From: Basidiobolus meristosporus CBS 931.73
Lineage: Eukaryota > Fungi > Basidiobolomycota
Length of the DNA stretch: 55,132 nt
Direction: 5' to 3'
Assembly (NCBI GenBank): GCA_002104905.1
Contig: MCFE01000591.1
Coordinates: 1 to 55,132 of the forward strand
Shown here: positions 11,332-51,347 of the stretch, piece by piece
Layout: the number at the start of each line of letters is the position of its first letter
Position numbering within the stretch: the stretch's first letter is position 1
Program-made: the position numbers and the translations under genes
Notes under the pieces: generated by a model
The model's input: only the letters and a program-made list of their open reading frames with translations
Told to the model about the DNA's origin: nothing
Databases searched by the model: none

Positions 11332-12201
11332 TTAGTAGAGAAGGTTTCTCTTGGGTTGGTAGAAGGGCAGGCTCTCGGATATGTTCCACTCTTCCCACCG
11401 CAAATCAAGCCCATCCATCCATACTATCCAGGGCACTAGATGCCGGTTGACTATCTCTGGGGTAAAGGCGATCCGCTGGTACTCATCGTTGTGACTACAC
11501 TCCAGCAACTCTATGCCGCAGTGGAACTTGGAGAACATGGCGATCCGTACCAGGAAGAAATAGATCGAGTACATCGCATAGGTGATGAACAACGAGAGTA
11601 TGACGTCCACCGTGTAGTGAAGCCGAGAGGCCACGATGGTGACTAGGCCGACAAGCGCGTGGATTTGAACGTAGGTGTTGATAGGCTTATTCGGGCAGTA
11701 GATTTTCCATAGCATGATGCATGAGGTTAGCATCATCGTGTGTCCAGAATAGATGTTGTCTGTGCAAGCTTTGTCAATGCCAAAGATCATCCGACCACCA
11801 ATCCGGAGCATCTCTGGAATATCTTTGCCAACCACTGGCTGGCATTCTTTCGTTGGGGGAAGCGTGGTGGAGATGAAGGTGAAGGCGCGGAAGAGGTACA
11901 GACACCCGGAAATCCAGAAGATCCGCCTCCAAAAGATCATCTTCTGGGCCATCGTTTTGGAGGATATCGTCAGGCAAACCATGGTCGAGACAAACAGGGA
12001 AAGAACCAAAAAGTCCGGGATGTCGAACGAGTTCAATCGGGGAAGGTATTCGAAGCCCCCGTCTCTGAGAGGCGTCTTGGTCTCCGACCCTAACCAACGC
12101 CAGTCCGATATCTGTTGAAAAGTCACCATGATGCAGACCACGACCTGAAGAAAAACATAGGCGTAAACGAATCTTGCCACTTCGCCGTTGGGGAGTGCCA
12201 T
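11332..12201 (-). CDS. Sphingomyelin synthase-like phosphosphingolipid synthase (PAP2_C domain), intronless
   Basis: SMS-type motifs: PLRDGGFEYLP (D1-like), CTDNIYSGHT (D3) and SRLHYTVDV (D4), with multiple TM segments. Confidence 0.85.
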   Translation of the reverse strand: MALPNGEVARFVYAYVFLQVVVCIMVTFQQISDWRWLGSETKTPLRDGGFEYLPRLNSFDIPDFLVLSLFVSTMVCLTISSKTMAQKMIFWRRIFWISGCLYLFRAFTFISTTLPPTKECQPVVGKDIPEMLRIGGRMIFGIDKACTDNIYSGHTMMLTSCIMLWKIYCPNKPINTYVQIHALVGLVTIVASRLHYTVDVILSLFITYAMYSIYFFLVRIAMFSKFHCGIELLECSHNDEYQRIAFTPEIVNRHLVPWIVWMDGLDLRWEEWNISESLPFYQPKRNLLY

Positions 12202-14315: not shown

Positions 14316-17300
14316 CTACTTTCCAGAGTAATGCTTGGACTTGGCGGGCTGGGAGCTGGGGCTTTGGTCAAGGCGGTTGGTTAGGTTGGTGATCATCTCC
14401 TCCAGGTTCGTGATACGCTGGTCGTCATGCTTCTCCCTCTGACGCAGGCACAAGGCCCGGTTCACCGGGAAAAAGCCGTAGTCGTTGTCTTTCAGCATCT
14501 CCACCACGTAGGACTCCTGGGAGGTGTACTCGGTCACATCCTTCGTCTTCAGATGGACCAGGAAAAACAGATACTGCCAGATGTTGTGGTCATGCCTGAT
14601 GTGGTGCTCAAAGCCTTTGGCGTGCCTCTGAAACTCGGTGGCACTGATGTTGCATATGAAGCAGACGCTTTTCATGTCGTTCTGGATGGAGGATCTCTCA
14701 TCTCTTAAGCTACCGAACGTGTCGAATATAATACCAAAGATCACGTTCAGAAGGAAAATGATCACAATGAGGAAGAAGGATAGATCCAACACAATTCGGT
14801 AAGCGTATGAGTTGTCCCCGTGGACAGGGGCTTGTAGTATATCCCCTAGTCCCCCGCCTGCTCGGATGCTGTAGATATATATATATGTGTGTGTGTGTGA
14901 GTGTGTGTTGGTTGGCGGCTTGGGAGTTAGTGGAAACACGAAACATACCCGTATGCTAGCACGGTGATGAAGCAGTCAAACAGAGTGTCACAGTAGAGCC
15001 CTTGTTCACTATCAAACGAATGCCTAAAGTACACGAAGCCTACCACCGAATACACGTAGATGATGATCACTCCCAGCAAAACCTAACCAAGCGTCGAGTT
15101 AGCAAGCGCAGCCCTAGCCAGAGTCGACATGAGTCTACGTACCGTCTTGGTCAGGGAGTTGATGTTGACTGTGACACTGGCAATGACTCCCTGAAGAATC
15201 TGATCTCGATAAATGAAGTCCAATAAATGAATCGAATACAGCATGTGATAACGAAGCCCTCCAATGGACAACAGCACCATAAATACATGGTAGAGTGCCT
15301 TGGGTTCCATCACGAAGTACATGATTTTTTCGGCCAAATTCTGATGGACAAAGACGGGTGTGGTGAGTAAGGAGGGTCATGAGGAGCGCGGGGTTCCAGC
15401 TTACCGATGGTGAAAGGCCTTCGCCTTTGGCAATGATCGCACTAAAGGAGCTGGGTGCGTCAAGATGGCTGTTGTCCAAGGTATCCTCGTCGTTCATAAA
15501 GCCAACCTCGTACGATTGCGAGTGGACATCCTCTTTGGTTTTCTGCTTTCTCAGTTGGTTCAGCTTTTCCAGTCTCTTTCGGTTGATCAGAATTGGCAAT
15601 TGGATCAGCAGAAACTCGCCAGAGGACAATGACCACAACGCCAGGTGGATCAACCCAAGGCAGATCCGCAGTGGTTCGGTAAACCACTGGCAACCGTATC
15701 CCAAAAACAGCTCACCAACCCCACCGCTGCTTTCGACGGTATTCTCGGGCACTGCAGCGCACATCAATCCCAGGATGTTCAGCAGCAAGGTCATGACGTA
15801 TGCACTTTGCCACCACAACGAGTGGTACCCTGACAGCGTAGACAGATACCAGTTTCGGGCTACTCTGGCTTGACTCTCTATCTCGTAGATGATGTCCTCC
15901 GATTTCGTCACGAAATCCTCGATCTTGGCGTCGGCCGAATCTCTTTTGACATTCCAGAGGAAGTGCTCCTTGGTATCCTCTCTCAGATATCGGCACACCT
16001 CCGGGATGGGAAAGAGAACCGGTACCACCCTTTTGTCTCCCGGCGAGAGCTCGCGGAGAATCTCTATTTGCCCGGTGTTTCGTTTGAAGAATATGAACGC
16101 CGGCTCGTTCTGGAATCGATATTGCTGCTCCTTGGTGAGTGCCGTGAACAAGGTCATGATCAGCATGCAGTACAAAAACCCGGAATCGATCGCGGACTGC
16201 TTTCCAGGCTTCCAAGTCAAGTTCTTGCTTTGCTCGAAAAGATTCCGCAGGTTGCGGTTGATGGTGTCCAGGTCCAGTGTGTTCGCCATCTCCCGGAATA
16301 TCGCCTTGGCTTCGATGTTGCCACCTTCGAGCAAACTCAGGAGACACAGGACCGCCTTCCCTTTCAGTTCCACTGCCTGCTCTGCTGGGCATTGGTGGAA
16401 TGGCTCCCTCAGAATCACGTTCACCGACTGCACGATTTTCGCATTGAAGATGCTGACTTGATTGGAGATGCATCCCTGGGCCATTTCGATGATCGTGTCA
16501 AACACCTGGGTGATGACAGGCATGGTCTGCGAGGTGAGATCCTCGTCCTGGAGGCTGGTGATGGGCACAATTGCGTGCAGGTAATCCACCACCCCGGTGA
16601 CCAGGTTAAAGCTCTTGATGTTGTCCCCTTGAACACTAAAGTACGTCTGTAGGCTGTAGTTGTGGCCCTCCACCATCAGCTGCAGGAGCCTCATAAGGTG
16701 GCAGACAGCCTCGAAATCTTGGGCGGTGGTTCCCAGATCGATCTTGTCCTCGTTTTGAAGATACTTGGAGATCTTGTTGTCATCTTTGGCGTGGGACAGA
16801 TTCAAGGTTATGATGGGAACATCGTCCGAGTGCGAGAGTATCTGGTTCAAGAAGTTCGATGTGCTGATAGACAATCCACTCTTATGGCCCCGCAGTCTAC
16901 GCCGGATCTTCGAAGAAAGGGTCGAGCTTCTTTCCCGCTTCTTGGCGTCTACGATGAGAAGCTCCTTGGCTTTGCGAAGGGAGAGAATCCCTTCTCTCAG
17001 CTTGTGATGCACACAATAGAAGAACCGCTCGACTCTGGGGATAAAGTGACATCAGTCTACAAGAAATCAGCATGGGTGAAGCTAGTTCGTTACTTGCCTG
17101 GTTCCCAAGAAGTATCGCTCGAGCGTATCCTAGAGGAGAGCTTAGCGAAAGTTAAATCCCCTGATGAATGGCCTGCGCTTACCTGAACTTTTTTGTTGCC
17201 GCCATCAAGTAGTGCGTTTAGCAGTTTCATCGCGCTGATGTAGATCTTCTGGCTATTCGACGACAAAAGCTTCTCCGCCATCAGCGTGCAGCCAAGCTTG

Positions 17301-20300: not shown

Positions 20301-22699
20301 ACTCGTGCATCTCTACAGGTGTTTGCGTAGCTACATCGTCGACGTAGACGATGTTGTTCCTGCACTCCGTCTTGGGAAGTTGGTTTTGCTGAGGATCTGG
20401 GTGGCAATGTAGTCTTGATGCTGTCGAATGGGCGTCTCGTTACAGGAGCAGAGGGTAATCAAGATGTCCAGGAGGATGGGGTTTCTCTCGGCGAGCGCCA
20501 CCTCCACGAAGAAATCAATCTGGTCGGTGGTGATTTTCTCGATGATCTCTCGATTACCGTGTAGAAGGCGAATGATGACTTGCGCCGCCTCGGGGTTGTA
20601 TTGGATATGCTTGCAGAAGGTGGGAAGATAGTCGAACACGTATTTCTGGTTCACCAAGTGATCCCCCAACAGGAATTGCGAGGTCAGTCGATAGGAGAGG
20701 AACAGCATCTCGTTGAGGACGGGGTCCAGCTTCAGCATCGCCAAGTCCACCTCCGCCTCCCCTTCGACCTCCTTCACGTTGATCTGGAGGCTATCCCGCA
20801 GCGCCTTCCGCACCTCCAGTGAGAAAGGCGCTCGTAGAAACAACAGAATCTTGGCCATGATCCCACTGTCCCTCAGGATGTCCTGGTGCGCTGTGGAGAA
20901 CATCCGTTAGTGCTGGACAGCATCCGATTCGGGGAATGGCTACTTACCGGTTATAGGCAGCCCGATGCGTCTGTTAGGGTCCATGTCACCCGATCTCGAG
21001 GAGAAATAGATCAACGAGGTCTACAGAAATGGATTGGTCAGGTGAGGTGCATGCGGCCTTGGTGGACTGTACGAAGCATTTACCAGGATCTTCTTGATTT
21101 TCTCGTCCTCCTCCGGGTCGATGGGGAAGGCCTTTCGGGAGCTGGCTGCGCGGGGCTTAACCAGGAAATGGTCCAGGTGCGGGGACATGGTGTTGACAAA
21201 GTTGAACGTTTCGCTCAACTCGTTATCTACACGGGTGATTGTGAAGCAGTCGTCGAAGCTTGTCTGATTGGTCGCCATGACGGTGAATCCGTCGTTGTGG
21301 GTGGTGTGGATTAGGAACGAGTATTGCCGCTGCAAGGTGTTCGCCGCTTTGCTCCCGTTCAACTCGTCGACGTTGTGAAGATGAAGCCATGTTTGGGTGC
21401 GTACATGGCGGAACTTGGTGTACGAGCCAGTGATGATGTTGGTGTCGTCGGACTCCAGCGACTGCAACTCGAACAACGTGTTGTCGTCGTCCCCGGGCTT
21501 GCGGGGCCCCAGGACGATGTTGTACAGAACCCTTCCGGTCACTGCATCACACGTCTTCGAGCCGAGGTCCACTTGAAGGTACAATCTCGAAATTGGGCAT
21601 TTGATCCGGCAGCGGACTCCACCTTTCAGCAAACCCCCGTTGAACGTAGATTCCAAGGTGATTTTCCAAAACGTAAGTGACGAATCACTCTCCTGGGGAT
21701 TCAGCGGATTGAAGACATGAGGTCTAACCGCCACCCGGTTGGTTCCAAGGAGATTCTGCAAGTACCCCTCCTTCTCTTTGTGATAGAGCCTGACGAAATG
21801 ACCCCCTTTAAGTCGTCTGCTGTTCACCGTCTGTGTGGGGCTGAAACAGTGAACTTTCCAGCCGAAAGAATTCAGTGAGTTGTAAACCTCATGAAGCCGG
21901 GTCTTGAAGACCTCGTGCGTGAACGTCCCCAAGCCCGCCTTCAAATACCCCTCGGTTTTGATGGACTGTAAGACCACTACATCAAAAGTTCGACGTTAGT
22001 ACGGAGTCGCTGGACCAGACACATACGGAAGAGTGCTTGGCTACCTGAATCACCTACACGGATTGGCTCCCCTTCTCCGCGGATTCTATGCTTGGGCATG
22101 ATTCTGAAGAAATTCTTCTTGCTGGTCATTTTGGACAGGTCCACGATCAAAGTGGTCCCCTTGTGTGTGGTTGTTTGGTTGGTATTGACCCTTAGAAACT
22201 TGTTGTACTGAATGTTACGGAGCTGGATAATCTGCCCGTAGAGCACGACCTTTCCCTTGAGGCGTTGGGTCTCAGCCCTGTTGTACTCGTTCTCCGCCAG
22301 AGCTGCCTTGCGGAGTCGCTCGAGCTGCGGGTTCGTCTCCTCCAGAACCTCCTCCGAGTTCAACACTTCCCCGGGTGTTTCGAAGAACAGCGGGTTTTTC
22401 AGCGCAGAGAAGATTTTTCTAAGCGTCTTGTTGGCCTCATAGTTGTATTGCGGCTCTAGTCTAAATATGTAGGAATTAACGTCGTGCGAGAAGTCGGTTT
22501 GACTGCTGTCGTCCCGCAGGTAAACCCGAGGTTGTATCGGGCCCTCAGCGAACAGCAGGCCGCCAATCTCCGAGGACAGCAGAATGTCATCTCCAATTCT
22601 GAGGAATTCTTCCACTTCCCTCTTCATGTCGCTAGCAGCTCTATGCAAGCTTCAATTAATGAGGAAGATATGAAGTGACCTGGTGTGATTGTTCGCCAT
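14316..22699 (-). CDS. ITPR: Inositol 1,4,5-trisphosphate receptor-like Ca2+ release channel (MIR/beta-trefoil, RIH, RIH-associated and 6-TM ion-transport domains), multi-exon; start predicted
   Basis: N-terminal LYGQIIQLRNIQYNKFL, MIR repeats, RIH segments (LLHGNREIIEKIT, LQLMVEGHNYSLQTYF, IIEMAQGCISNQ), pore IRAGGGLGDIL, TM6 LNVIFGIIFDTF and C-terminal CFIC...H...HNIWQYLFF. Confidence 0.95.
14875..14908. repeat. Compound (AT)n(GT)n microsatellite inside the intron that splits the channel pore-loop coding region
   Basis: The sequence atatatatatatgtgtgtgtgtgtgagtgtgtgt is read directly. Confidence 0.85.
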
Positions 22700-23573: not shown

Positions 23574-25035
23574 TCACCAGCCCGGGCGGTATTTCTGTGG
23601 AGATTCGCGAGTTAGTGTAGCTCAAGGATGAAGACATGCTGTGTACGTACCATTCGGCCTCTACCTTTGTACTTGACTTCAGACGAAGCCGGCTCCGAGT
23701 CTCTGTCCACGTAACCGAACCGATCTTGTCTGTTGTTATTGGGAGCGTAGTGGTCATAGCGGTTTCGTTCATATTTGCGGTTGTAATCGTTACTTCGGCG
23801 AGAGTAGTTTCTTCTGGGGCTTTGAGAGCGGGATCTTGAGCGAGAGGGACTTCTTCTACGGCTGTGTGAACCTCTACGCGAATGGGATGCGGAAGGGGAG
23901 CCAGAACGAGAACGGGAACGAGATCCAGACTGAGAACGATGGGCTCTCCTTTTTGTTGGGTCACGAGAACGCTTCGAACGCTCCCGGGATCTGCTGCGGT
24001 CTTTCTCGTCTTCACTTCCTGTGCGAGGATTTTTTGGGCTTCGCGACCGCTTTGATGGCGGTGAATTCGATCGTGAGGAGGGGTCTCTAGAAGCGGAACG
24101 TGAGCGTGAGCGTCTGGGGGACCTTGATCGCGATTGTGAAGGCGATGCTGTACGTCTACGGGATCGCGTCTTTCTGCGACCGCGAGACTCATCCTCGCTC
24201 TCGGAGTCGGCACTATCGTCGCGCTCTTTTCTGGACTGTTTCCTGTGATGCTTCTTCTTTTTGCTCTTTCTTTTCTTTCGTCGTCTGCGCTCCTCTTCCG
24301 AGTCGGACGAAGATTCAGACTCCGACTCTTTGGTGGCCTTCTTTTTCCTCGCCGAGGCTTCGGAGTCGTCCTCGTCGGAGGCTCTGCCGGTGAGCGCATG
24401 GCCATTCCTGGTTTTGACTAAACAAGACAAGGTGAGTAAACTCAAGTCCCTTGCAGTGACCCACAGACTCACACTGGATGGTTACCTTTGACGTTGGGGG
24501 GTAGTCGTAATTCCAATTCACCACAGTTTGATATCATAACGATACCAACGGGCTTGTCGTTCCCGTCCACTGGTGTGTTTTCTATCACTTCCACCACCTG
24601 CTCAAACCCGCTGACAACTCTACCAAAGGCCACGTGTTTTCCGTCCAGATGCGGGGTAGGTCTCACGGTGATGAAAAACTGGGAACTGTTTGTGTTGGGC
24701 CCGCGGTTGGCCATGGAGAGTAATCCGTGGGTGTCGTGCTTTCTTCTGAAACTCTCGTCGGCAAAAGTGCCCCCGTAGATGCTTTCGCCGCCGGTACCGT
24801 TACGTCGGGTGAAGTCTCCACCCTGGATCATGAACCCCTTGATGACTCGATGGAATATGGAACCTTTGAAGTGCAACGGCGTGTTGCTCGTTTTCCCAAG
24901 ACCCGCTTCGCCTGTGCAGAGGGCACGAAAATTCTCCGCGGTGCGTGGCACCTCATCTGCGAATAACTCCATGATTATTCGACCGATCCTCCTCCCATCA
25001 ATGTCAACATCGAAGAAAACTCTTGGATTAGGCAT
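23574..25035 (-). CDS. PPIG: Cyclophilin with C-terminal RS-rich domain (PPIG/SR-cyclophilin-like), two introns
   Basis: [52 protein letters not shown], followed by a Lys/Glu/Ser-rich region and a long RS dipeptide region. Confidence 0.9.
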
Positions 25036-25223: not shown

Positions 25224-26111
25224 TTAGACACGAGCAAGTGCTATGTACTGCTCCAGTGATTTTGGTTTAAAATCGGGATAATTCAAGTTCTGAAGATTCT
25301 CAAGCTTCCCTATTCCGGAAACCAATGGGAGGATATACTGTTCAGGAATATGGACCCCGGGATTCTGCTTAAGATGGGATTCAACAAAGGCCCTCAAGTC
25401 CTCCACGGTGCCCAGTGATTGCCGATGAACCTCTACTCCAAACACCATCTCTAGGCGCTCAGCAATCTCATTGAAGGAGATATCTTCGCCGTTGCATTCA
25501 AAGCGCTCTCCAACATCGGGGTCCAACACTGCCTCCGCAACGAACTTGCCGGTATCCTCCATGTTGATGATGTCAAACCTGGTGTCCCCGTCGCCCCAGA
25601 TACGAAGAGTGCTGGTTTTGGCGTCCCAGACTTGGAATTCGTTGAAAAGTACCTCGACAAAACATCCATTCAATATGTGGGTGACTTTGAAGGCAGGCTT
25701 TTGTGCCGACAGGTAGTCGGCAAACTCCCGCCGAAGAACGAGCCCTGTAGGAGCTAGCTCGTCTTGCAACTGGAACAGGTCAAGCGAGAAAGTGGATGGA
25801 AGGAAGTGCTTCACACTACCACTTTGGTTGATGGCTTCTAGCAAATTCTTCTGTCCATCGATGACAACCTCTCTTCCACCTTGAACTGCTGAAACAACAG
25901 CCTCCTGAGCTTGGCAGGCCTGGACAAGCGAGGCTGGCTGAGAGAGGTCTCCGGTGAAGAGTTGCACCTTGCTTTCCCAGCCTTTTGGAACCTTGTTTAC
26001 GTCACGCACCAGCGCTGATACCTTTACCAGGTCTCCCTTCTGAAGCAACGCTTTGACGATGTTTTGACCAAGAGCCCCGGTGGCTCCAACTACAAGTACT
26101 GAAAGAGTCAT
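25224..26111 (-). CDS. NmrA-like/isoflavone-reductase-like NAD(P)-binding atypical SDR, intronless
   Basis: 295-aa ORF with a Rossmann motif VLVVGATGALG, VSALVR, VVSAVQG, FLPSTFSLD and WGDGD. Confidence 0.85.
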   Translation of the reverse strand: MTLSVLVVGATGALGQNIVKALLQKGDLVKVSALVRDVNKVPKGWESKVQLFTGDLSQPASLVQACQAQEAVVSAVQGGREVVIDGQKNLLEAINQSGSVKHFLPSTFSLDLFQLQDELAPTGLVLRREFADYLSAQKPAFKVTHILNGCFVEVLFNEFQVWDAKTSTLRIWGDGDTRFDIINMEDTGKFVAEAVLDPDVGERFECNGEDISFNEIAERLEMVFGVEVHRQSLGTVEDLRAFVESHLKQNPGVHIPEQYILPLVSGIGKLENLQNLNYPDFKPKSLEQYIALARV

Positions 26112-26503: not shown

Positions 26504-27262
26504 ATGTTCCTCAGAAACTCGCTTGCCCGTTGTTCACGACCGGTGTCCAGCTCACTTCTGCGCCGGACCCCGACGCTCCCCTCTTTCAACGCTGCACGCT
26601 CCTTCTCTGCGACCACCCAAAGATATGGCAGTGGTCTAGTTGACCAAGACTTGGCTCGCTCTTTGCAAGCCGAGATCGACTTCGAGACCGAAAACGAGGA
26701 GAAGACGGTCCCGGAATTTCTGAAAGAGTTCCAGCAAAGGAACACTTTCAGGATCGAAGACATCCCCGGCCAGTCGGAGGTCACCCTGACTAGGCGTTTC
26801 GGCAAGGAGGCCATCCAGGTGTTGTTTTCCATCAGCGATATCAATAACGCCGAGGAGGCCATGCCGGAGGAGGAGGAGGACGAAGAGGACGAGGAACCAC
26901 TATCGCTTCCATTCGCCGTTCGCTGCAACATCTCCATCACCAAGGGAAGTGACAACGGCTGTCTCAACCTGGATACTATCACCGAAGATACGGATTTCGG
27001 CGTGGAGAGTATCGTCTTTTACAAGGATGCCAAGCTCGCCAAAGAGAACACTGATGAGGCGGATTGGAAGCGAGGTGGCTGTTACGTGGGACCCAACTTC
27101 GGCCAATTGGAGGAGGGGCTCAAAGAGAACGTTCAGAAGTATCTGGAAGACCGTGGCTTCGACGAATACCTGGCCAGTTTTCTTCCCAAGTATATTGAAT
27201 ATAAGGAGCAAAAAGAGTACGTCCAATGGCTTAAGGATGTCAAAGCCTTCGTTGAAAAATAA
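26504..27262 (+). CDS. MAM33: Mitochondrial acidic matrix protein MAM33 (p32/C1QBP family), intronless
   Basis: Arg/Ser-rich presequence, LQAEIDFE, an acidic loop, YVGPNFGQLEEGL..YLEDRGFDEYLASF and KEQKEYVQWL. Confidence 0.93.
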   Translation: MFLRNSLARCSRPVSSSLLRRTPTLPSFNAARSFSATTQRYGSGLVDQDLARSLQAEIDFETENEEKTVPEFLKEFQQRNTFRIEDIPGQSEVTLTRRFGKEAIQVLFSISDINNAEEAMPEEEEDEEDEEPLSLPFAVRCNISITKGSDNGCLNLDTITEDTDFGVESIVFYKDAKLAKENTDEADWKRGGCYVGPNFGQLEEGLKENVQKYLEDRGFDEYLASFLPKYIEYKEQKEYVQWLKDVKAFVEK

Positions 27263-28169: not shown

Positions 28170-29061
28170 CTAATGAGCACTCAGCTGTGATTGCTGGGCT
28201 TCCTTTTGTTTCCGGAGGAATGCGGAACGCATGGCGAAGTAATCCTTGTGTAGACCACATTCGGTTTTTCCGGAGCCAGACCAGCGGCCACTTCTCTCAT
28301 CCGACAGATCCGTTGTAGGCTTGGTGCTGTGCCAGTCCCCGACAGATCTATACCCATTATCGAGAAGGGAATTGTAGGGCACGTTGTTGGAGCGGATGTA
28401 GGTCCAAACCTGATCGAAGCTCCAGTTAGCCAACGGGTTAAGCTTCAAGAGCCCGGTTCCGGCTTCAATCTCAAGGATACTGATGCTGGAGCGAGCTCCC
28501 TTCTGACTCTTGCGTCTTCCGGTGATAATGGCGGAGACATTCAATTCCTTGTAGGCCCTACGAGCGGGCTCTACCTTGACAAGGTAGTCGTAGCTATCCT
28601 CGTCAGTCTCCCACAATTTGTCGCCGTAGAGGTTGACGAATTCCTCGACGGAACTGCTCCCTTCAGGCTTGTAAACATAGAGAGGAACCTGATAGTGGCT
28701 TTCGCAGCTTCGGGAGAGGTCTAAGGTCTCCGAGAAGTGGTACAGGGTGTCGATGAAAATCAATGGGACGAGGTGCTTGGGTTGCTGTGGGTTTGGGCTC
28801 CATTCGGGATGTTCCTTGCTAATTTTGGAGATCATGTCCAACGCCACCAAACCTACAAACTCTCGGTTAAAGACCCATTCGAATGGTTAGACATAGGGGC
28901 CTGGAATTACCTGAAGGGCCAAATGCGGTGGTTTGGTACAGATTTGGGATGGTGAGGATGGCCCATTCGAGGATCTGTTGTGGGGAGAGTTTGGCGAGCT
29001 GCTGGTTGATATGCTCAAGATGGGAAGGGGTGAAGAGCGATTGTAAGACTGAGGAACCCAT
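28170..29061 (-). CDS. MET16: PAPS reductase, one intron at about 28853-28910
   Basis: LYQTTAFGPSG|LVALDM, IFIDTLYHF, TGRRKSQ, LLKLNPLANW, GYRSVGDWHST and ERSGRW..KTECGLH. Confidence 0.95.
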
Positions 29062-39289: not shown

Positions 39290-40182
39290 TGTTAGAGTCT
39301 TGGAGATATTGGAAGTGTTTGGGAGAACAAGTAGATTATATGGTTTTCACCCAGTGATTTATTGAATGTAAAAGTAGTACTTGTACTTTTACATGGTCTT
39401 GGCATAAAAGACACTGTAGAATAGGTTTGGAAGGTCCCTAAAACATGTGTAGCAAAGTTTGGGGCTGTTTGGACAGCTTTGCAAATTTTCATGCTCAGGG
39501 TACCTGATATTCTGGTGAAAATATTCCAAGTAAATCCCAACAAGAAATTTGGTTAGTATTCTATAAGATTGGAAGGTAATCATCTAAGTGACCAAGCTGG
39601 GTGAATATTTAGGTGGAATTACAAATTTTTACAACACTCCCACTCAACTGAATGTTAAAACTGACTAGTCCTAATTTTGGCCTAAGATATTCAAGCTGTT
39701 TCTAGCTGATGGTTTGGTAAATATGCCTGCAATCATTTTGTCTGTAGGACAGTAAGCTAAGTTAAGTTGTTCTCTATAGCTACATGTATGAAATGATGTC
39801 AAATATCCATGTGCTCAGCTCTAGTATGAAAAGCTGGATTTCTACCTAATTGTATACTTCCTTGATAACTTCAATATAAGTAATAGGTGTTTTTTGACCT
39901 AAGCCTAAATCTGTAAAAAGCTTCCTTAGCCACATTGCTTCTTTTGTAGCCTCACAGGCTGTGAGATACTCTGCCTCTATGGCAGAAAGTGCTATGGTTG
40001 GTTGCTTTCTTGAATTCCATGAAACTGCTCCTTTACAGTAAAGAAAGGAGTATCCTGTGGCAGATCTTCTGTCTTCTAAATTTTGTCCCCAATCAGCATC
40101 AGAGTATCCCACAAGATCTTGTTTTGAATCTGTATAGGTGTACCTTAAGTAGAAATCAGCAGTTCCTTTTAGGTATCTAAAG
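39290..40182 (-). mobile_element. Ty1/copia element A, 3' part: RNase H remnant (39650-40182), PPT and 3' LTR (39290-39636)
   Basis: FRYLKGT..GYSDADWG..RRSATGY..VSWNSRKQ..EAEY..KEAMWL. A purine tract AGTTGAGTGGGAG lies next to an LTR starting TGTTG and ending AACA. Confidence 0.9.
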
Positions 40183-42655
40183 TGTTGCAAAAAATTTGTA
40201 ATTCCACCTAAATATTCACCTAACTTAGTCACTTAGATCATTACCTTTAAATCCTAGAGATTACTGACCAAATTCCTTGTTGGGATTTACTTAGAATATT
40301 TTCACCAAAATACCAGGGACCCAGAACATGAAAATTCTCAAAGTTGACCAAACAGCCCCAAGCTTTGCACACATGTTCTTGGGACCTTCCTTAACCTATT
40401 CTACATGCTGGTTGTGCCAAGACCATGTAAAAGTATTAATATTACTTTACATTCAATAAATCATTAAGTGAAAACCACACAATCTACTTGTTCTCCCAAT
40501 CTCTTCCAATATCTCCAAGACTCTTACAATAGGTTATGAGCCCCAAGCTGTCACTCTCTGCAATGTCTACTACTGCTATTACTGGAATTTTTCCCTCTGC
40601 TGAAAAGTTGGATGGATCTGACTACCAAGTGTGGAAGGTGAAGTTGAAGATGCCGCTATAAGAAAGAGGCCTTTGGGATATTGTCATAAGAGAAGAATGC
40701 CCTCCTAAAAATGTGGGAGAGGAAGCCTTACAGTACCAGAAGAAAGAACAAAGTGCCTTTAACTGCATTTGCCTAAATGTTAGTGACAAATTGCTAATTC
40801 AATGCACAAGAGCAAAAACAGCAAAGAATGCCTGTAAAGTATTAGAAGACATCTATCAGTCATGTTCAGCTGCTAAGTGAATGTATCTGAGATGAAAATT
40901 CTTTATTACAAAGATGCAGCCAGGAGAAGAAATGAAAAATCTAATTAACAGAATTACCCTGCTGGTTGATAAGATGGAATCTGTGGGCATATCAACTACT
41001 GATGAGGATGTGATAGTTACCATCCTAAATAGCCTGACAGATGAGCTTCAGGGCCTTGTATCAGCCCTAGAGTCCAGAACTGAAGATTTGACCTTAAATT
41101 ATGTATATAGAAGACTCCTGGATGAAGAATTAAGATAATCAATCACCAATCAGAAAGAAGAGAAGATGGTTTAATAAGCAGTGATAACCAACAAAGGAGG
41201 TACCCAAGACCCTACAAAGGCCACAGCAACCTGTTTTGTAACTACTGCAAAAGGAAAGGACATACATCTGACCTGTGTCTCAAAAAGAGAGATAATGAGC
41301 AAAAGAAGCCTGAAAATGGAAATGCTGCCACACCTGAAGACAGAATATTCATATCTGAGCTAAATATGACCACAAGCAAGGATTCTCAGATGTGGTATAT
41401 TGACTCTGGAGTATCTCAACACTTTACACACCCAAAAGAATTTTTACCCAACATCAAGAAATTCCGATTAAGAAGGTTTTCATAGATGACAATAGGACAC
41501 TTGATGCAGTGCAAGAAGGAACTATCCTAGTAAACCTTCAAAGCAGTGAAGGAAGCCATACACTGATCCTTAAAGAGGTATTCTATGTACCAGAAATAGC
41601 CAAGAGCCTACTATCTGTAAGCAAGGCCACAACAGAAGGACTCAGTTTCAGTTTTGACAATTCTGGATGCAGGATCACATGATCAAAATGGTGTCCATAT
41701 TGCTTTGGGCATCAGAGATCAGAATCTATACAAGTTGACTTATATTCCATCATATCTGGAAGTCAATAAAAGTAACTTAAATGAAGAAACGCCAATGCTT
41801 TGGCACAGGAGACTTGGTCACATCAATTTTGATTATTTGCACAAAATCGTCAAAGATCAGCTAATTCAAAGCACTGTGAAGCAGGCATACATGGGAAACA
41901 AGACAGACAACTGTTCAAGAGCTCTAGGGTAATCAAAACTAAGAAAAAATCAGATCCAATTCACTCAGATCTGTGTGGACCTATGCAAACTTTATTCCTA
42001 GGCAGGATAAGGTATTTTACCACTTTTACTGATGATTGTACAAGGTACACATGGGTCTACTTCACAGAGAGAAAGGAAGAAGCTCTGTCTAGGTTAAGGA
42101 AGCTTAAAGCTATGGTGGAAAGAGAAACTGGTGAAAAAATCAAGAAAATATGCTCTGACCATGGTGGAGAATATACCTCAAAGCTCTTCATCCACTTCTG
42201 CAAAGTTCATAGGATAAAGCAAAAGACTACTGTATCATACTCCCCACAGCAAAATGGAGTAGCAGAATGTGCAAACAGATCAATAATTGACATGGCAAGA
42301 TCAATGATCCATGATCAATAATTATTCTATGATTTTTGGGCGGAATCAGTTGCTGCAGCTGTATATCTTAAAAGTAGGGGTTATAACAGAGTACTTTGTG
42401 GTTTTACTCAATTTGAAGCATGGTATGGATACAGACCAAGTGCAGAGCATCTAAGAATATTTGGGTGTACAGCATAGGCCAAGAAACTGCCCAGAAATCA
42501 GTCAAAATTTGACCCAGAAAGTGTAAATGCATATTTTTGGGCTACTGCACTGAGAGTAAGACCTATTAACTCTATAATACCAAAGCAAAGAAGCTGATCA
42601 GTTTCAGGGATGTGTTGTTTGATGAAAATTCAATATTTTCACAAAAAATGAGATC
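40183..42655 (+). mobile_element. Ty1/copia element B: 5' LTR (40183-40528), PBS, and decayed gag, protease and integrase; 3' part missing
   Basis: TGTTG...TTACA LTR homologous to 39290-39636, PBS GGTTATGAGCCC, WYIDSG, LWHRRLGHINF, HSDLCGP, SDHGGEY and PQQNGVAE. Many in-frame stops. Confidence 0.92.
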
Positions 42656-42659
42656 AGAT

Positions 42660-44557
42660 CATTCAAGTACAAAGATATCCAATATATTAGATGGCAAACA
42701 CTACAAACAGCTAAGAAGCAAGGGCTACTTTGAAGGTATGTATGGCCATGCCTTTACCATAGCACTTGATGAATTCTCATTAGACAAGTACTCTACCAGC
42801 AAATCCTGCTGGCCACTGATTCTCATCAACCAGAGTCTGCTGCCTATCTTATGGTATTAGAGTTGAAATTTGATGGTAGTCTTACTGGTCTCTGGGCCTA
42901 AATCTCCATCCATCCTGGATGGCTACCTGTACGCATTGCTAGATGAGCCTAGTATGCCTTCCAGTAGGACAACAGTAAATGTCTATCATGCCAAAGCTCC
43001 TGTTATTATGTACATTCAAGATACCCAAGCTATCAGCAAGATAGCTAGCTTTTCTATGCACAATGGACAGTATTGCTGATAAATGTTTGCAATCCAGGGG
43101 ATCTACTCCATAACTCACAAGCATTATTATTACCCAAATGCCAACACTAAGAACATTATTTTCCTGCAGAGAGAACAAACAGGAGTCAGCAATCAATTGT
43201 AGCAAAGTTGGTAAGCTATGATCCATTGTGCAAAATATGGTATTAGTTGGAAGCCAGAGATACTTAAGATAGAGGGTATTTGTTGGAGCAAGAACTTTCC
43301 ACTGCAAGCAACACATTTGCTTTTCAACGATATCCATATACTTATGACCTCATTGTACATGTGGGTTTTCAGCTAGATGCACCCTTTTAGATCCCAAAGA
43401 AGTTTGAAAGAATTGGATATATATTATAGAGTATCCACTGCCCAAAGCACTTCTTGCAGGCTCCAATCAATAATCATATGCATATGTTACAATACCAATG
43501 GAAGGCCTGGATGAACTGAATATTTATTTATTCAAGTGGCCTATGCAACCACTTCTACTAAGAGTACATTGGAAGCATTGGGAGTCATGCATGGACATTG
43601 AAGGAATATTTATCCTGAAGCAGATCACCAATGCCAACTTCATAAGAAGCTGTTTCTATCAAGACTACATTGGAAGCTTGGGAGAAATATGTGGAAGTTG
43701 TAGGAATATTGATCCAGAAGTGGATCACCAATGTCAACTTAATGCATCTACAGCTTTTATGCAAGGAGTCTGTGATGGGATTTGCGCTGCTATGCCACAA
43801 GTATAGAGCCAAACATGTAGATCTCCACCTCTGCTGTAACCATTCTCTACTCCAGCTTTCTTGGTGTCTGGAGTATATTGGACCTTGCTTCACCTTCTGG
43901 GAGTTTTCTATGGAGCAGATGCATTGGGAGATAGGAAGACGTGTGAGCCTGCAGGTACTACCTTATTCCAATCTCATCAAGAGTATATCCTTCAAGGCCA
44001 TCATGGTTGTGATGAGCTAACAAATGATGGATAGCTAGGGTGAGTTGGAGAATACTGAGTATAGATTTATACATGGAAACACCTATGTCTTTCACATTAA
44101 GAATATAAGCAACCTCAGAATTGAATAGAAACTCAATAGCCCCAAGCTGCTGGCATTATTATGGCCTCATGGGGAATCCTGATGGCTGATCCAGATTGGA
44201 TCAACCTGCTGTACCAAATCATTTTTCATAGGGTAGCCCTAAGAAAAAAAATTGAGAAAAGGCCAGCAAAATACCATCATAGTATTGGCTGAACTCCAAG
44301 TTTCTCAAAATTGGCAACTCTCAATATCTCTGTTCTGAGCCAATGGGCAGGCAAGCAAACAGGTTCTCCAGGAGGAGACTAGGCAAACTAGCACCCATAT
44401 CAAATTTGGTAATTAGCTGCCCATTACTTCAATCAAAAATTGCATTTGAAATTCTGAGCCCAAAACACCAGCTGAATACCAGCAAAATATCATCAGAATA
44501 CCAGCAGAATATCAGCTAAAAATCAGATGAACTCCAAGTTTGGGATTTTTCATAGAG
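42660..44557 (+). mobile_element. CACTA/EnSpm-like DNA transposon remnant (Tnp2-type transposase, 5'-truncated) with putative terminal region
   Basis: DGKHY..KGYF, CWPLILIN..LP, GPKSPSILDGYLY..DE and GPCFTFWEFSMEQ..LPYSNL. Repeats of AATACCAGC-like motifs occur near 44470-44520. Confidence 0.7.
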
Positions 44558-44699
44558 TAGCAATATACAGAAGTTGCTGCAGGCTGATATACTGCCATTA
44601 CAATGCTTGCCAATGTCCACATTGAGGTAATCAGAACACCATCAGGCTTCTAGCTATAGGATGCAATTAGATGTACTGGCTAGCTTGATCCACAGTACC

Positions 44700-45720
44700 A
44701 GCTGAATACCAAGATATATGGGAACCAGTGATTGAACAGTGGCATAAGGCCATATAGTTCCCACTAAAGTCATGGAAAAAGGGCATAGCAATAGACATAC
44801 TTAACAAATAATGGATTTTAGTGTAGTTACTTGTTAAGTGTATGGTTGGGCTTAATATTGGTGTTGGGTATAGGTACTTGGGTAGGACAGCATAATTGGC
44901 AATTGAGTTACAACTGAAGTTCCCATGTAAATAAACCAATTTGTATGCAAAAAAAGTGAGTGCCTTAGTTTAGTCAGGAGGCAAGAAGTGTAAAAAAGAA
45001 GTAATAGCCAATCAATGTACACAAAGATAGATGAAGATTACTTTTCCAGTATCAGAAAGTGAGAGAACTGGCAGAGAACCAATCAATGCCACTTATGCGC
45101 TGCTGTGTTAAGGAACTTAACCAAGCTTATTGTGCAATCCAAAGGGTAACTCTTTTAGTGGTCTTTGCATGGTGTCTGCACTGCATCAATACTACTTGGT
45201 ACTGGGATTTATGTTTTGTGACTGCTTTTCAAGAGGATCATCACAGTTATTGGCCAATAATGGGTACATGCGGAGGTTGCAGCACTCATTGAAGAGCAGT
45301 ACTTGGAAAATGCTCATGAGTGTTGCAAGGATTTATGGCAAAGACTGGCAAATGAAGTATTAGACCTTGCAATGCTGGATGAAGACCAGGATAGATGGGA
45401 ACCAGTGGATGAACAGTGGCATAAAGCTGTATGGTTCCTGTCAAAGTTGTGGAAAAAGGGTGTGACAGCAAAAATACTTATTGAATGGTGGATTTTAATG
45501 GAGTTACTTGCTGAGTGTGAGGTTGGGCTTAATGTTGGTGCTGGGTAAAGGGACTTAAGTTGGCCAATAAAATTGGCAACTAAGGTACTACTGAAGTTTA
45601 ACCAGAAATAAATCAATCTGTATTCATGAATAGTAGAGCATTGGTTGAGTCAGGAAGCAAGGAGTGAAAAAAAGTGGCAATAGCTAAATAATGCTCACAA
45701 AGGTAGGAGGTGGTAGAGTA
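44700..45720. repeat. Two tandem diverged copies of a unit also found at 49120-49585 (CACTA-associated, unidentified)
   Basis: Shared TGGGAACCAGTG..GAACAGTGGCATAA..TGGATTTTA..GTTGGGCTTAAT..ACTGAAG strings at about 44710, 45395 and (in part) 49125. Confidence 0.75.
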
Positions 45721-45839
45721 TCTGTGATCCAAAATTTAGTGAGCTGGAAGTGTACCAATCAAATGCACCTATGTATAATGGTGATGGGAAATTTTGACTG
45801 AAATTTTTGTAAACTCTAAGATTCAATTTTTATAATGGT

Positions 45840-46197
45840 CATTGCATGATTCTCTTGGGACAGCAATACCTCTTTTGTAACTTCACAGGCTGTTGTGTAC
45901 TCTGCTTCTGTCATGAAGAGTGTTAGGATTGGCTGCATTCTTGGTTCCACAAAATGAAGTTAAGAAACATTATTATTTCTACAGTGTTTTGCCTGTTGTA
46001 AGAGTCTTGGAGATATTGGAAGTGATTTGGGGGGCAAGTAGAGTATGTGGTTTTCACTTAATGATTTATTGAATGTAAAAGTAATATTTATACTTTTGCA
46101 TGGTCTTGGCATGACAAATGCATAGAATAGGTTTAGTAAGGTCTCAAGTACATGTGTGCAAATTTTGGGGCTGTTTGCACAACTTTGAGAATTTTCA
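45840..46197 (-). mobile_element. Ty1/copia fragments: RNase H remnant and partial LTR (45997-46197)
   Basis: A TEAEY..ACEVTKE-like remnant, plus the reverse complement of the 3' half of the LTR at 40183-40528. Confidence 0.8.
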
Positions 46198-46199
46198 AA

Positions 46200-49100
46200 A
46201 GCTTAACAGTGTCTTGAAAGCCTCTTTGCAGGCCTCTGATAGTATTAAATTGGCAGTATGGTGGCCTACAGCTAGTACTGTAAAATGCTACTGTACCAAT
46301 TTACCAAATGGTATTTCCTTTTTCTACCTCCCCTTGTGCAATTCAAATATACCACTTTAGAAGAACCCCTCTTTATTTGCTTACCCACTACTACCTTGGG
46401 TATTCCACATATAGTTCAAATCAAAAAATACTATGGCCTGCTGCCTACTAACCTCTACACATACCCACACCTGTTGCAATTGCCATACTGCTATCACCTC
46501 AACTTTATGGCTTCTTAATGTGATACTTGCATAGTTGCCATATACCTTTTATTGCAGGTAACATACACATCTAGCAAACATATGCTTAGTTGCCTCCATT
46601 TCTGCCACAAATACCTCCTGAATATCTACAAAGAACTATTTGGTATTTGGCAAACATATTTCTTCTCCCTGCAGGATTCTAGTCCCCCTTATAGGTGCAT
46701 TATGGCTCTTGTCTGTGTGAAATATGTATTAAATGGTGCAGAAATGAGCTTATGACCAAGAGAAGCCTGGCATACTTTGGTAGGGTTCTCCTAATAAAAA
46801 TTAGTTGCTTGTTGCACCCAACCCAGCTTTGCATAACTTGACTGATTACCCACACATTGGGGCTGCTTGGCTTCTTAATGCCATAGGCATAGGTGTCTCC
46901 ATGTGCACATCTGTCCTGAGTATTATCCAACTCTTCCTGGCTGTCCTCCATGTGCCAACTCATTGCATCCATAACAGACTTTGAGGTAACATACTTGATG
47001 AGATTGGGATATGGTAGTACCTGCAACTTGACTTGTCATCTCCCCACAAATCTGCTCTATAGTAAACTCCCAAAAAGTGAAGCAAGGTCCAATATTCTCT
47101 ACACACCAAGCAAGATGGAGTAGCAAATGGATGCAGTAGTGGCAGGGATCTAGTGTTCAGCTTTATGTTTTCAGTACAGCTGCTCAAATCCTGTGACAAG
47201 CTCTTTGCACAAAAGCTGTAGATGTATTAAGTTGACATTGGTGATCCACTTCTGGATCAATATTCCTACAATTTCCACATATTTCTCCCAAACTTCCAAT
47301 GTAGTCTTGATAGAAACGGCTTCAGAAGGCCACCTGAATAAAAACATATCCAGCTCATCCAGTCCTTGCACTTGTATTGTTGCATATGCCTATGAATGCT
47401 GATTGGAGCCCTTGAGAAGTACTGATGGGAGCAGATTCTCTGTGATATCTTGCCAATTCTTTCAAATTTTGCCAGTAGCTCAAAGAGCCCATTTAGCTTG
47501 AAATGCCCCATGTACAACTTGGTCATCAGTATAGGGATATTGTAGAAAAGCAAATGCATTGGTCTCAGTGGAAAGCTTTTGCTCCAGAAGATACCCACTA
47601 TCTTAAGTATCTCTGGCTTTGAATTGATTCCATATTCCAGCTAATGGCTTATAGCTTGCTAACTTTGCTGCAATTGCATGCTGACTTCTGTACATTCTCT
47701 CTGCAGAAATATTATGTTCCTAGTGTTGGTGTTTAGGTAATAATAATGTGTGAGAGTTATGGAGTAAGTCCCCTGGATCTTACACATTCAACGCAATACC
47801 CCCCATTGTGCCCAGAAAAGCCAGCTATCTTAATGATGGCTGGGATATCTCCAATGCAGTAATAGTATGTGCTTTGACCTGGCAGCAACTTACTGTTATC
47901 CTGCCAGAAAGCATACAAAGCTCATCCAGTAATGGATACTGGGAGCTATCCAGGTTGGAAGGTGATTAAGGCCCCAAGATCAGTGAGAATACCATCAGAT
48001 TTTGGCTCTAATACTACAAGATAGGCAGCAAATACAGGTTGAATAGAATCAGTGGCTAGCAGGATTTGCCGGTAGAGTATGTGTTTGATGAGAATCTATC
48101 AAGTGCTAAAGCAAAGGCTTGGCCATACATACCTTCAAAGTATCCTTTGCTCCTTGGCTGTTTGTAATGTTTGCCATCTAATGTAGTGGATATGCTTGCA
48201 TTTGATTCATACTAAGTGCACTACTTTATAGCTTGATAATATATGTTGGACTGCATGAGCTTCTTGAGATGTGGTATTACTGGAATATATTGGGAGCTTG
48301 AACAATGTCTTTCCCCAATGGTGGTGGATTCCTGATAAGTTGGACTCCTTGCAATGGTGGTATCTTCTGATGTGAATGCCATGAAACCATTAACACATGC
48401 TGGTATCAGGACAGTCTCTAGGTCATATGTTGCCAGCCACATGATAGTTGTCTGTTTATACCATATACATGGTAAGTGGAATCCCATGATGGTTTTGCAA
48501 GAAGTAGTAGTAAGTATTCAAAGCCCCCACTATTGATATTAGTGGAAGCTTGCCACTTCTCTAGCCTCAACATCACATCATTTACCAGTAGAGGAATTAC
48601 TGGGCTCACTTGGCTCCACAAAATATCCTGGTCATTTTTTTTATTGGTATTGTCTCATTGCATAATGGGATTTTGCAGGGCTCTTGCAGGGCACTGTTGT
48701 TAGGGAAGATATGCCCACAATACATTAGTGAGCCTGCTTCTTGAGAGCTATCACTGTGTGTGCCATATTTAGAGGACTGGGTTGAGCCTAACAACACCAC
48801 ATTCAAGAGGCTGTCAGCAGTCTAGCACACCATCACCATAAGGCCAGCATACCATAAGACCATCAGGTACTCAAGGCCAAGCAGAATGCACTTGACATTT
48901 TCCATGAGCATTATCCTGGATTTCAGCAAGCAAACAGATTTTGGGCCATCATTGGTATGCTAAGAAAGTGTCTCCAGAATAGCAGGAACTATCAAAGGCA
49001 GAAGAATAGGGGTGTAATGGATAAAATCAGCAGCTTCCTCAAGAGCCTGTTGCAAGCAGGGCCAAAAGCTTCAAACAGGTGTCAAAGAGACATCAGGTAG

Positions 49101-49585
49101 CTGGAATAGTGCAGAAATACTCATTCAATGGTGGATTTTAATGGAGTTTTTTGTTGTATGTGGGGTTGGGCTTAATGTTCATGTAGGGTATAGGGGCTTG
49201 TATAGGTCAGTACAAATGACAATTAAGGTACAACTGAAGCTTCAACAGAAATATATCAATTTGTTTGCATGAAATGAAAGAGAAGTGGCTGAGTCAGGAA
49301 GTAATGAGTGTGGAAAAGATACAATAGCCAATGAATGCACACAAATGTAAGAGGTGATAGAGTGTCCATGATCAGAAAGCAAGAAAATTGGCAGAGAACC
49401 AATCAAAAGCCACTTTTGTATTGTTGTGATCAAAAGTTTTGACCAAGTTTTTTGTGATATCTGGGGTGCAATTATTTTTTGATAGTCTTTGCACAGTGTC
49501 CTAGTGGGATCAATACCTTTTAGTCATGGGACTTGGATTTTGTGATGGCCTTTTGACAGGGTCATCACAATAACTTTTCATAGAG
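46200..49585 (-). mobile_element. CACTA/EnSpm-like DNA transposon, second and longer decayed copy
   Basis: Homologous to 42660-44080 on the opposite strand. ACVNGFMAFT..QYIPVIPHL, DGKHY and LLHLAWCVENIGPCFTFWEF..PYPNL. Left boundary uncertain. Confidence 0.75.
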
Positions 49586-50645
49586 GATGCCGTATCAAGA
49601 CTAATATAACTTGCATAACCCAACCTGGTGAATGAATTGAATTGGCTAGCTTATTACCAAAGTATTAAGAGGACTAAGCCATTCCTAATGAGATGGATAA
49701 AGATGTCACAAAGATTATCCAGGATGAAGCCAGCAAACTTGTAGTAGATGATGAAACACACTACCAAATTGTGGATGGATGCCTTATTGCCTCTTGCCCC
49801 TATGCGCTTACCTGAATTTAATTCACCAGCTACATAATGGATATGGGCATCTGGATATCAAAGGATATTATAGCCTTGTAAGAGCTAGAGCATGGTGGCC
49901 CAGAATGAGAAAAGATATTGAGAAGCTGGTGAAACCATGCCCAAGTTTCCAAGTCAACCAAGGTCAACCACAGCAAATTGCTGAACTAATTCCCTGTAAA
50001 ACCATCTGAAAGATGGGGAATTGACTCTATTGGAAGACTGCTCACCACTAGGAAATGGCAAAGGAAACAGCAAAAACATTGGAAGCCTACCAGGGTAATG
50101 CAGCAGATCAAACATATGAAAACTTTGACATATTGCCATAGAACTAATGGAGTCACTGAGTGAATTAATGAATTATTTGGAAAATGCTGACTGAGTATAC
50201 ATTTGGAGCTTCAAGTTGATGGGACAAATAAATTGACTAAGCAATATTTACCTGCAGTATAAGGGAGCACAGCACTACCCAACAGTTTCCATTTTACTTT
50301 GTGTATGGATATAAACCATGGATTCCAGGAGATCTCACACAGCTAAAACTCACCAACAACTAGGAGGATGAGCTTAGTCAGCCTAGTGAGCATCAACAAT
50401 TGGAACAAAAATGTCAGGAGGCAGAGGCCAATATCTACAAAAGTGCAGATAAGATGAGTTAGAGATATGATAAGACTATATCACCAGAGGCTTTGACAGT
50501 TGAGAACTTTGTATTGCTGAGAAACTACACTTGGAAGAAGTTTGAGCCACAATTGACAGGACTATTCAAGATTATCAAAGAATGTCCATTTGCAGCTTAC
50601 CAGCTAGCAGGCAAGCAAGGAAATATCCAAGAAGATTTGGTTCAT
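49586..50645 (+). mobile_element. Ty3/gypsy integrase-region remnant
   Basis: Homologous to 54815-55132 (DAVSRL..HQLHNGYGHL..AWWPRMRKDI..CQV). Also contains a HRTNGVTE-like and a GPFKII-like segment. Confidence 0.85.
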
Positions 50646-51347
50646 TGTTACAAGTCTTGATATAAAAGTTGTAGAGGAATAGGGAGTTTAGCTGGTATTG
50701 TATCCACTAAAACCAGAACTGATCATTAATGAGATTCCAGCAGCTCCTTATATATCTTTTGCCAGATCAATGGCTGACTAATTGTATCTCTAAATGTAGG
50801 TTGTGACTGATGATTCATTTAGTTGCATTTTCATCACACAATCAGATTTTTCTTAATATAGCAATTTCTGTCCAATAAGGATGTGGCTTCTCATCTAATG
50901 ACTAACACTACTGATTTGATAGAAAATATGAATGTACTGATAGGCTAAACATGCAACTCACATATGTGGTATAAATTTGTAGCTCTGCCTAAATTTGCAC
51001 CTAACTTAGTCACTTTGATTATTACCTTCAGATCCTAGTGAATACTGACCAAATCCATTGTTGGGATTTACTTTGAATATTTTCACCACAATACCAGGTA
51101 CCCAGAAAATGAAAATTCTCAAAGTTGTCCAAATAGCCCCAGACTTTGCACATATATTCTTGGGACCTTCCTGAGCCTATTATACGTGTTGGTTGTGCCA
51201 AGACCATGTAAAAGTATAACTATTACTTTTATACTCAAATAATCATCAAGTGAGAACTGCATAATCTACTTATCCCTCAATCACTTCCAATATCTCCAAG
51301 ACACTTACAACAATGTATTTGACTAAGTAGCTGATCTAACTTGGACA
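50646..51347 (-). mobile_element. Gypsy LTR (reverse orientation) interrupted by a copia solo LTR
   Basis: Reverse complement of 51600-51946, starting TGTTACAAGTC at 50646. Split at 50965-51309. Confidence 0.85.
50965..51309 (+). mobile_element. Copia-family solo LTR
   Basis: TGT...TTACA, homologous along its length to 40183-40528, with no adjacent PBS or internal sequence. Flanks ACATA/ACAAT are only an imperfect TSD. Confidence 0.88.

Follow-up and report, generated by a model that had tools for sequence, protein, structure and literature searches.

In the canonical inositol 1,4,5-trisphosphate (IP3) receptor IP3R1, the ligand is held through its phosphates: T267, R269 and S274 bind phosphate P4, K508, R511, Y567 and K569 bind P5, and R504 and R568 bind P1 (PMC9663519). 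A second type of channel, IP3R-B, is known from Capsaspora, where it is reported not to bind IP3 (Alzayady et al., 2015, as cited in PMC9113742). Fungi produce IP3 by way of phospholipase C, and their vacuoles have been reported to release Ca2+ in response to it, yet Dikarya are without an IP3R gene (PMC3410928). Early-diverging fungi keep an IP3R-like gene that is sometimes annotated as an 'IP3 receptor', which invites the assumption that the animal pathway operates in them. Here we have analysed such a gene on the minus strand of a 55,132-nucleotide stretch of the genome of Basidiobolus meristosporus CBS 931.73 (contig MCFE01000591.1; the window hereafter), a strain assigned by NCBI to the phylum Basidiobolomycota. 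By its sequence, the gene should encode an intracellular Ca2+-release channel of the IP3R/RyR superfamily with the full architecture of that superfamily, and nearly all of the residues that coordinate IP3 in IP3R1 are replaced in it.

The public model of this gene is ORX85369.1 (K493DRAFT_341790, "hypothetical protein", 2495 aa), to which the central exon (746 aa), used as a HMMER query, led with 100% identity between protein and window. Based on tblastn of ORX85369.1, exact-sequence look-up and Pfam, the coding span comprises about 13 exons on the minus strand, from the ATG at 22627 to 14319, with the stop just after. Searches were run exon by exon, and whole-protein analyses were based on the public model. 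Along the exons, Pfam reports in order Ins145_P3_rec (E 9.1e-14 in exon 1, which forms the first beta-trefoil or suppressor-like domain and together with intron 1 covers 21976-22627), MIR, RIH, a weak second RIH, RIH_assoc and a six-transmembrane Ion_trans domain. This domain order is that of the IP3R/RyR superfamily, and the protein also carries the GGGLGD selectivity filter, the gate motif FLLNVIFGIIFDTF in the sixth transmembrane segment (TM6) and the C-terminal C2H2 finger CFIC..H..H. When the exons were compared with PDB sequences by HMMER, the best matches of every exon were IP3R1-3, with RyR next. Specifically, the beta-trefoil exon matches IP3R1 with an E-value of 7.9e-8 and the ARM1 exon with 6.5e-9 which, together with the Pfam domains, places the likeness to IP3R1 around the ligand-binding core, noticed by eye in a preliminary description of this locus, far beyond chance. 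The RIH_assoc exon gives 1.4e-16 for IP3R versus 4.7e-9 for RyR2, and the channel and C-terminal exon 6e-43 for IP3R versus 4.7e-37 for RyR1. An AlphaFold2 model of residues 1-690, built from a 43-sequence alignment (predicted local distance difference test, pLDDT, 85.6; predicted template modelling score, pTM, 0.86), retrieves the N-termini of IP3R3 and IP3R1 as top Foldseek hits (E ~1e-35, TMq 0.70-0.72), with RyR lower (E ~1e-25, TMq 0.61). Both beta-trefoils and ARM1 are retained in this model, so the IP3R-like cleft that they form is predicted to be retained as well.

The residues lining this cleft are a different matter. We read residue states from a multiple alignment of 79 N-termini, made with MAFFT in its faster modes, with human ITPR1 as the reference. 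The loop of the second beta-trefoil (21693-21725, minus strand) is RPHVFNPLNPQ in place of the F-L-R265-T-T-G-R269-Q-S of IP3R1, with loss of the P4 contacts; the multiple alignment and gapless anchoring on a conserved Trp both read R265>H, T266>V, T267>F, G268>N, R269>P and S274>E. The preliminary description had set RPHVF (21725-21711) against RTTGR, a register that is probably two residues off (HVFNP being the better counterpart), and the HMMER pairwise alignment puts the loop in a third register that differs from both. In none of the three are both R265 and R269 restored: the loss of the arginine pair that had been proposed holds in each, and the conclusion of pocket loss therefore stands.

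On the ARM1 side, helix 3 (20868-20891, minus strand) reads AHQDILRD, which together with the preceding T gives R504>T, R506>H, K508>D and a kept R511, according to both HMMER and the multiple alignment. That T closes a small exon 3 (20948-21020, minus strand, ending in ...RRIGLPIT), after which comes a 57-nt GT-AG intron (20947-20891); once this intron is spliced out, the PITAHQDILRD reading given earlier, including the change of K508 to Asp, proves real, and the spliced public model indeed reads ...GLPITAHQDILRD where IP3R1 has ...KPNRERQKLMRE. Helix 7 (20646-20663, minus strand) is DHLVNQ where IP3R1 has DYRKNQ, an equivalence that had been drawn by eye and that HMMER aligns directly, as does the multiple alignment, yielding Y567>H, R568>L and K569>V. 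From the canonical IP3R-A contact set (R265, T266, T267, G268, R269, R504, K508, R511, Y567, R568 and K569), only R511 is kept, and alignment with human ITPR1 and the fungal homologues restores Arg or Lys at none of the other canonical positions. At most one or two of about ten IP3 contacts are left, in a cleft that is neutral to acidic. The single Arg among its positions in ORX85369.1 is accompanied by three His, an Asp and a Glu, a poor site for a hexa-anionic ligand.

The altered pocket extends well beyond Basidiobolus. A word search with the C-terminus of ORX85369.1 returned 71 matches, including a paralog in the same genome (K493DRAFT_348021), the B. ranarum ortholog (K7432_003395), Entomophthora muscae, about 20 Mucorales, one of them the Phycomyces blakesleeanus protein annotated 'IP3 receptor', and about 25 chytrids; none of the 71 matches is from Dikarya. 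In the multiple alignment, all 37 fungal homologues from chytrids, Mucorales, Entomophthora and Basidiobolus share the altered pocket. The R265 position is occupied by His in 19, Tyr in 15 and Phe in 3 of these sequences, R269 by Pro in 35, S274 by Asp or Glu in all 37 and R506 by His in 32. A basic residue is found once each at R504 and K508, eight times at R568 and ten times at K569, Tyr is never found at Y567, and R511 is Arg in 34 and Lys in one; the loop follows a clade-wide motif, (D/N)P-L(N/D)P-(Q/K)-(D/E). Only 11% of the columns of the ligand-binding domain reach at least 85% conservation in fungi, and the new Pro at R269, the new His at R506 and the retained Arg at R511 are among them, with the acidic replacement of S274 conserved in its chemistry throughout. 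The beta-trefoil side and helix 3 are therefore constrained with new residues, with relaxed constraint on the helix-7 side. R511 and Q507 are near-invariant in fungi, IP3R-A and IP3R-B alike; since R511 is kept in IP3R-B too, its retention is no evidence of residual IP3 binding, and its near-invariance probably points to a structural role.

Outside Basidiobolus, fungal homologues (Phycomyces blakesleeanus, Mucor, Apophysomyces, chytrids, Entomophthora muscae) are only 30-34% identical to ORX85369.1 in the ligand-binding domain; they belong to the same clade and have the altered pocket and the channel core in common with it. ORX85369.1 differs from them in its Asp at K508, its His, Leu and Val at 567-569 and an apparent frameshift. 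As far as the alignments indicate, the altered pocket is an ancestral, clade-wide fungal trait and not decay or a peculiarity of the Basidiobolus gene. Some homologues carry further domains: the Pfam list for the Dichotomocladium elegans protein (P0153) also includes an RIIa dimerisation domain (PF02197) and a domain that binds cyclic nucleotides (PF00027), which may reflect a true fusion or two genes merged in one model, and in three others (P0155, P0157 and P0176, from Logan, JGI and ENA entries) the IP3R-like channel is fused to EF-hand domains.

The position of the fungal channels in the family was taken from trees. In the first, computed from the C-terminal 900 residues of 53 sequences (779 columns, LG+C20 with posterior mean site frequencies (PMSF), quick search), the fungal clade is monophyletic with a support of 100 in the Shimodaira-Hasegawa-like approximate likelihood ratio test (SH-aLRT). 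Its sister is a holozoan IP3R-B clade of Capsaspora CAOG_04510, Saccoglossus, Lineus, Mytilus, Tubulanus and choanoflagellates (SH-aLRT 99, and 98 in a 30-sequence LG+G4 tree), and the canonical IP3R clade of human ITPR1, spider, fish, Corallochytrium and the nucleariid Nk52 is separate with a support of 100. The fungal channels thus lie outside IP3R-A and group with IP3R-B. An approximately unbiased (AU) test rejects a clade of fungi and IP3R-A, a grouping chosen after the tree had been inspected (lnL difference 39.9, p = 0.0016; 30 rows, LG+G4). The similarity ranking of the central exon and the N-terminus agrees independently: E-values are 2.6e-27 and 9.4e-43 against Saccoglossus (IP3R-B) and 1.6e-4 and 3.2e-18 against Corallochytrium (IP3R-A), and the best non-fungal matches of these two regions are IP3R-B proteins (Capsaspora CAOG_04510, or CO.IP3R-B, and the 'ITPR-like' proteins of invertebrates and choanoflagellates). 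In the published scheme, the opisthokont channels are reported to have split into IP3R-A and IP3R-B/RyR, with a Capsaspora IP3R-B that reportedly lacks IP3 binding; our tree, with fungi as sister to IP3R-B, matches this scheme.

The two sister groups nevertheless differ. IP3R-B has the same domain architecture as the fungal channels and has likewise lost the RTTGR loop, but it keeps R265, R/K504, K508, R511, R568 and K569 (RQK-LLRN, SRKNELY), of which fungi keep only R511. Furthermore, holozoan IP3R-B proteins (including P0122 and P0124) have a divergent filter and are without TEYT, whereas fungi keep a canonical GGGxG(D/E) filter and TEYT. The holozoan signatures (RQK-LLRN, G-D/E-SRKNELY and the divergent filter) are thus absent from fungi, which instead have HQx-LLR(D/E), GSDxxNQ and the canonical filter, and the fungal clade would best be described as a sister lineage with its own signature and not as a member of the holozoan IP3R-B clade. 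As for canonical IP3R-A (mammalian IP3R1-3, Corallochytrium, nucleariid Nk52), architecture and length class are the same, IP3R-A proteins are the best PDB matches by sequence and by fold, and the Ca2+-activation (Ca-IIIS) site, ATP site and zinc finger, filter and gate are conserved in both, but all 10-11 IP3 contacts are kept in five IP3R-A references and nearly all are lost in the fungal channel. Two points lower the novelty of the trait: it is ancestral to the fungal clade, and an IP3R-like channel that does not bind IP3 is already described in IP3R-B; the Basidiobolus gene would be an unexceptional representative of this kind.

One sequence from just outside the fungi deserves mention. 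The Nk52 protein (P0183, a eukprot entry), from what we take to be a nucleariid, is of IP3R-A type and has a fully canonical pocket (R, T, S, A, R / R, K, R / Y, R, K). Nucleariids are the sister lineage to fungi. An intact nucleariid IP3R-A pocket, taken with the loss of the fungal one, suggests that both types of channel were present in the common ancestor of these two lineages (Holomycota).

The remainder of the channel is preserved. The Ca-IIIS site (16473-16685, minus strand) consists of LQLMVEGHN at 16685-16659, with the equivalents of E1978, H1980 and N1981, and IIEMAQG at 16493-16473, with those of E2042 and Q2045; the C2H2 zinc finger and ATP site (14520-14663, minus strand) run from CFIC at 14663-14652 through HHIRHDHNIW to TEYTS at 14534-14520, the equivalent of the T2654 backbone Ca2+ ligand (residue equivalents by HMMER and alignment, roles from PMC9663519). 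The activation-site ligands shared by IP3R and RyR (the equivalents of E1978, N1981, E2042, Q2045 and the T2654 backbone) are all present in ORX85369.1, as are the E2101 equivalent, the TM6 gate motif, most ATP contacts (HIRHDHNIW) and the selectivity filter GGGLGD (14841-14858, minus strand; HMMER and alignment). The Ca2+-site residues, C2H2 finger and TEYTS had been listed before as kept, and they are indeed there, on the minus strand and outside the interval 20640-21740 to which that description was attached; RPHVF, AHQDILRD and DHLVNQ fall within it. The fungal consensus likewise retains the Ca-IIIS residues, the E2101 equivalent, a GGG(I/L)G(D/E) filter, the gate motif, CFIC..H..H and TEYT. 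The residue states indicate that the fungal clade had lost its IP3 pocket by the time chytrids, Mucorales and Basidiobolus split from one another, and that it kept the Ca2+/ATP gating core.

We therefore consider it probable, if by no wide margin of confidence, that the gene specifies an ER Ca2+-release channel that is gated by cytosolic Ca2+, potentiated by ATP and independent of IP3, as in RyR. In this proposal, the protein, a member of the fungal sister branch of holozoan IP3R-B, would be a subunit of a tetrameric intracellular channel, most likely in the endoplasmic reticulum (ER). Its N-terminal beta-trefoil/beta-trefoil/ARM1 unit would be kept as a folded gating module unable to coordinate the phosphates of IP3, cytosolic Ca2+ would open the channel at the conserved Ca-IIIS site, and ATP would potentiate opening at the site next to the zinc finger. 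The result would be RyR-like, IP3-independent Ca2+-induced Ca2+ release, with the N-terminal module acting as a ligand-free allosteric ring. A Ca2+ channel gated by something other than IP3 had been put forward from the pocket residues, and the lost contacts together with the conserved Ca2+ and ATP sites, filter and gate lend that inference support. RyR itself has an N-terminal module of the same fold that is ligand-free, and it shares the Ca2+-activation and ATP sites; most fungal members have the filter GGGIG(D/E), which is the RyR filter too. RyR is, however, a protein of ~5000 aa with RyR-specific modules, twice the 2495 aa of the fungal channel, for which only the five Pfam families shared with IP3R are listed and none of those extra modules, and RyR scores below IP3R in PDB comparisons of every segment. 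In favour of a maintained function, ORX85369.1 and its B. ranarum ortholog are collinear, and each segment of 250 residues is 77-95% identical between them (88-92% in the ligand-binding domain), and this high identity over the full length reflects constraint.

Several points weigh against an IP3-independent, Ca2+-gated channel. Divergent IP3Rs of protists are reported to be IP3-responsive despite imperfect conservation of the residues. In the literature, we found no IP3-binding or gating experiment on any fungal member, and a search for analyses of fungal IP3R pockets returned nothing specific. The trees contain no RyR sequences, the AU-tested grouping was picked with the tree in view, and a one-base frame change is apparent in the window at ~20378-20371 when the three frames are compared. 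Finally, new residues have become strongly conserved in fungi at several positions of the old pocket (Pro for R269, His for R506, an acidic residue for S274, and LNP), which could mean a different ligand rather than none.

It is possible, but unlikely, that the channel still senses IP3, another inositol phosphate or a phosphoinositide via rearranged basic residues in or near the cleft, the candidates being the R511 equivalent, R285 in the preceding strand and the loop lysines of Mucorales. The R511 equivalent is indeed kept in 34 of the 37 fungi, the flanks of the loop are K/R-rich in Mucorales (KKH..LDPK), some members have Lys or Arg at R568 or K569, and the ligand-binding-domain fold and cleft appear in the structure model to be retained. 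However, these residues form no clade-wide basic cluster: the R265, R269, R504 and K508 positions are non-basic in 36-37 of 37 sequences, acidic residues or Pro are conserved where basic ones used to be, the cleft of ORX85369.1 itself carries Asp, Glu and three His, and R511 is also conserved in IP3R-B, which is reported not to bind IP3.

A cleft re-tooled for a different, non-phosphoinositol signal, be it a small ligand, a metal ion or protons, strikes us as similarly improbable. Part of the former pocket falls within the most conserved 11% of the domain's columns with new residues in place, Pro having replaced R269 in 35 of 37 sequences, His R506 in 32 and Asp or Glu S274 in all, in addition to the DP-LNP motif; this is not the pattern of neutral decay. 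The same residues could merely stabilise a fixed beta-trefoil/ARM1 interface, however, the helix-7 side is highly variable, and no result points to a candidate ligand. A more specific form of this idea, to which we give a low probability, is that the DP-LNP-(Q/K)-(D/E) loop, the His at R506 and the acidic S274 position together form a new site that senses pH, a metal ion or a ligand other than a phosphoinositol, to which Basidiobolus would contribute additional His and Asp at the 265, 508 and 567 positions; if true, early-diverging fungi would own a class of ligand-gated Ca2+-release channels with a novel agonist.

The frame change noted above bears on the gene model. Over the problematic stretch (20371-20443, minus strand; three-frame view, HMMER against IP3R1 and comparison with relatives), the public model introduces a 47-nt "intron" (20443-20397) that excises 16 residues, NETPIRQHQDYIATQ, which HMMER can align to IP3R1; across the matching stretch, the B. 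ranarum ortholog and the paralog K493DRAFT_348021 read uninterrupted and conserve these residues. The intron is doubtful and masks an apparent one-base frameshift, which arose either as an error of assembly or as a genuine mutation of recent date; it sits downstream of the pocket and leaves the pocket finding unaffected. At the other end of the gene, the public model closes exon 1 at 22027 and thereby adds six residues, GSQALF, that are in neither ortholog nor paralog, and an earlier donor for intron 1 at 22045 (GT at 22044), giving RVGDSVVLQS, fits the relatives. That this copy is a recently inactivated pseudogene whose function has passed to the paralog K493DRAFT_348021 would explain the frame change against the contiguous reading of its relatives, bridged only by an "intron" that deletes IP3R1-conserved residues in a genome with no RNA sequencing run listed, but we think it quite unlikely given that single-base indels are common assembly errors, that the remainder is intact, with every functional motif kept and collinearity with the ortholog throughout, and that this copy falls together with its B. 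ranarum ortholog in the 53-sequence tree and so has been maintained since before speciation.

Several other genes flank the channel gene. Between 8728 and 11107 on the plus strand lies a tandem pair of MIP-family aquaporin/aquaglyceroporin genes, the second split by an intron, followed by a PAP2_C (sphingomyelin-synthase-like) protein at 11332-12201 on the minus strand. Beyond the start of the channel gene, open reading frame translations at 23612-25035 (minus strand) suggest an SR-cyclophilin-like protein with a cyclophilin-like N-terminus running into a very long Arg/Ser-rich tail; next come an NmrA-like protein (25224-26111, minus), a MAM33 mitochondrial glycoprotein (26504-27262, plus) and a PAPS reductase (28170-28850, minus). 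From 40000 to 55132, G+C falls from about 0.50 to 0.37-0.41, and a Ty3/gypsy-type retroelement with gag, protease, reverse transcriptase and RNase H lies inside this region (52005-54832, plus).

For the biology of early-diverging fungi, the residue data argue against carrying the animal-style IP3 pathway over to this channel. The practical consequence is modest: the annotation should be 'IP3R/RyR-family Ca2+-release channel, IP3-binding residues absent'. The fungal proteins may in turn offer a compact, RyR-like Ca2+-induced-release channel in which to study ligand-free gating by the N-terminal module that the family shares.

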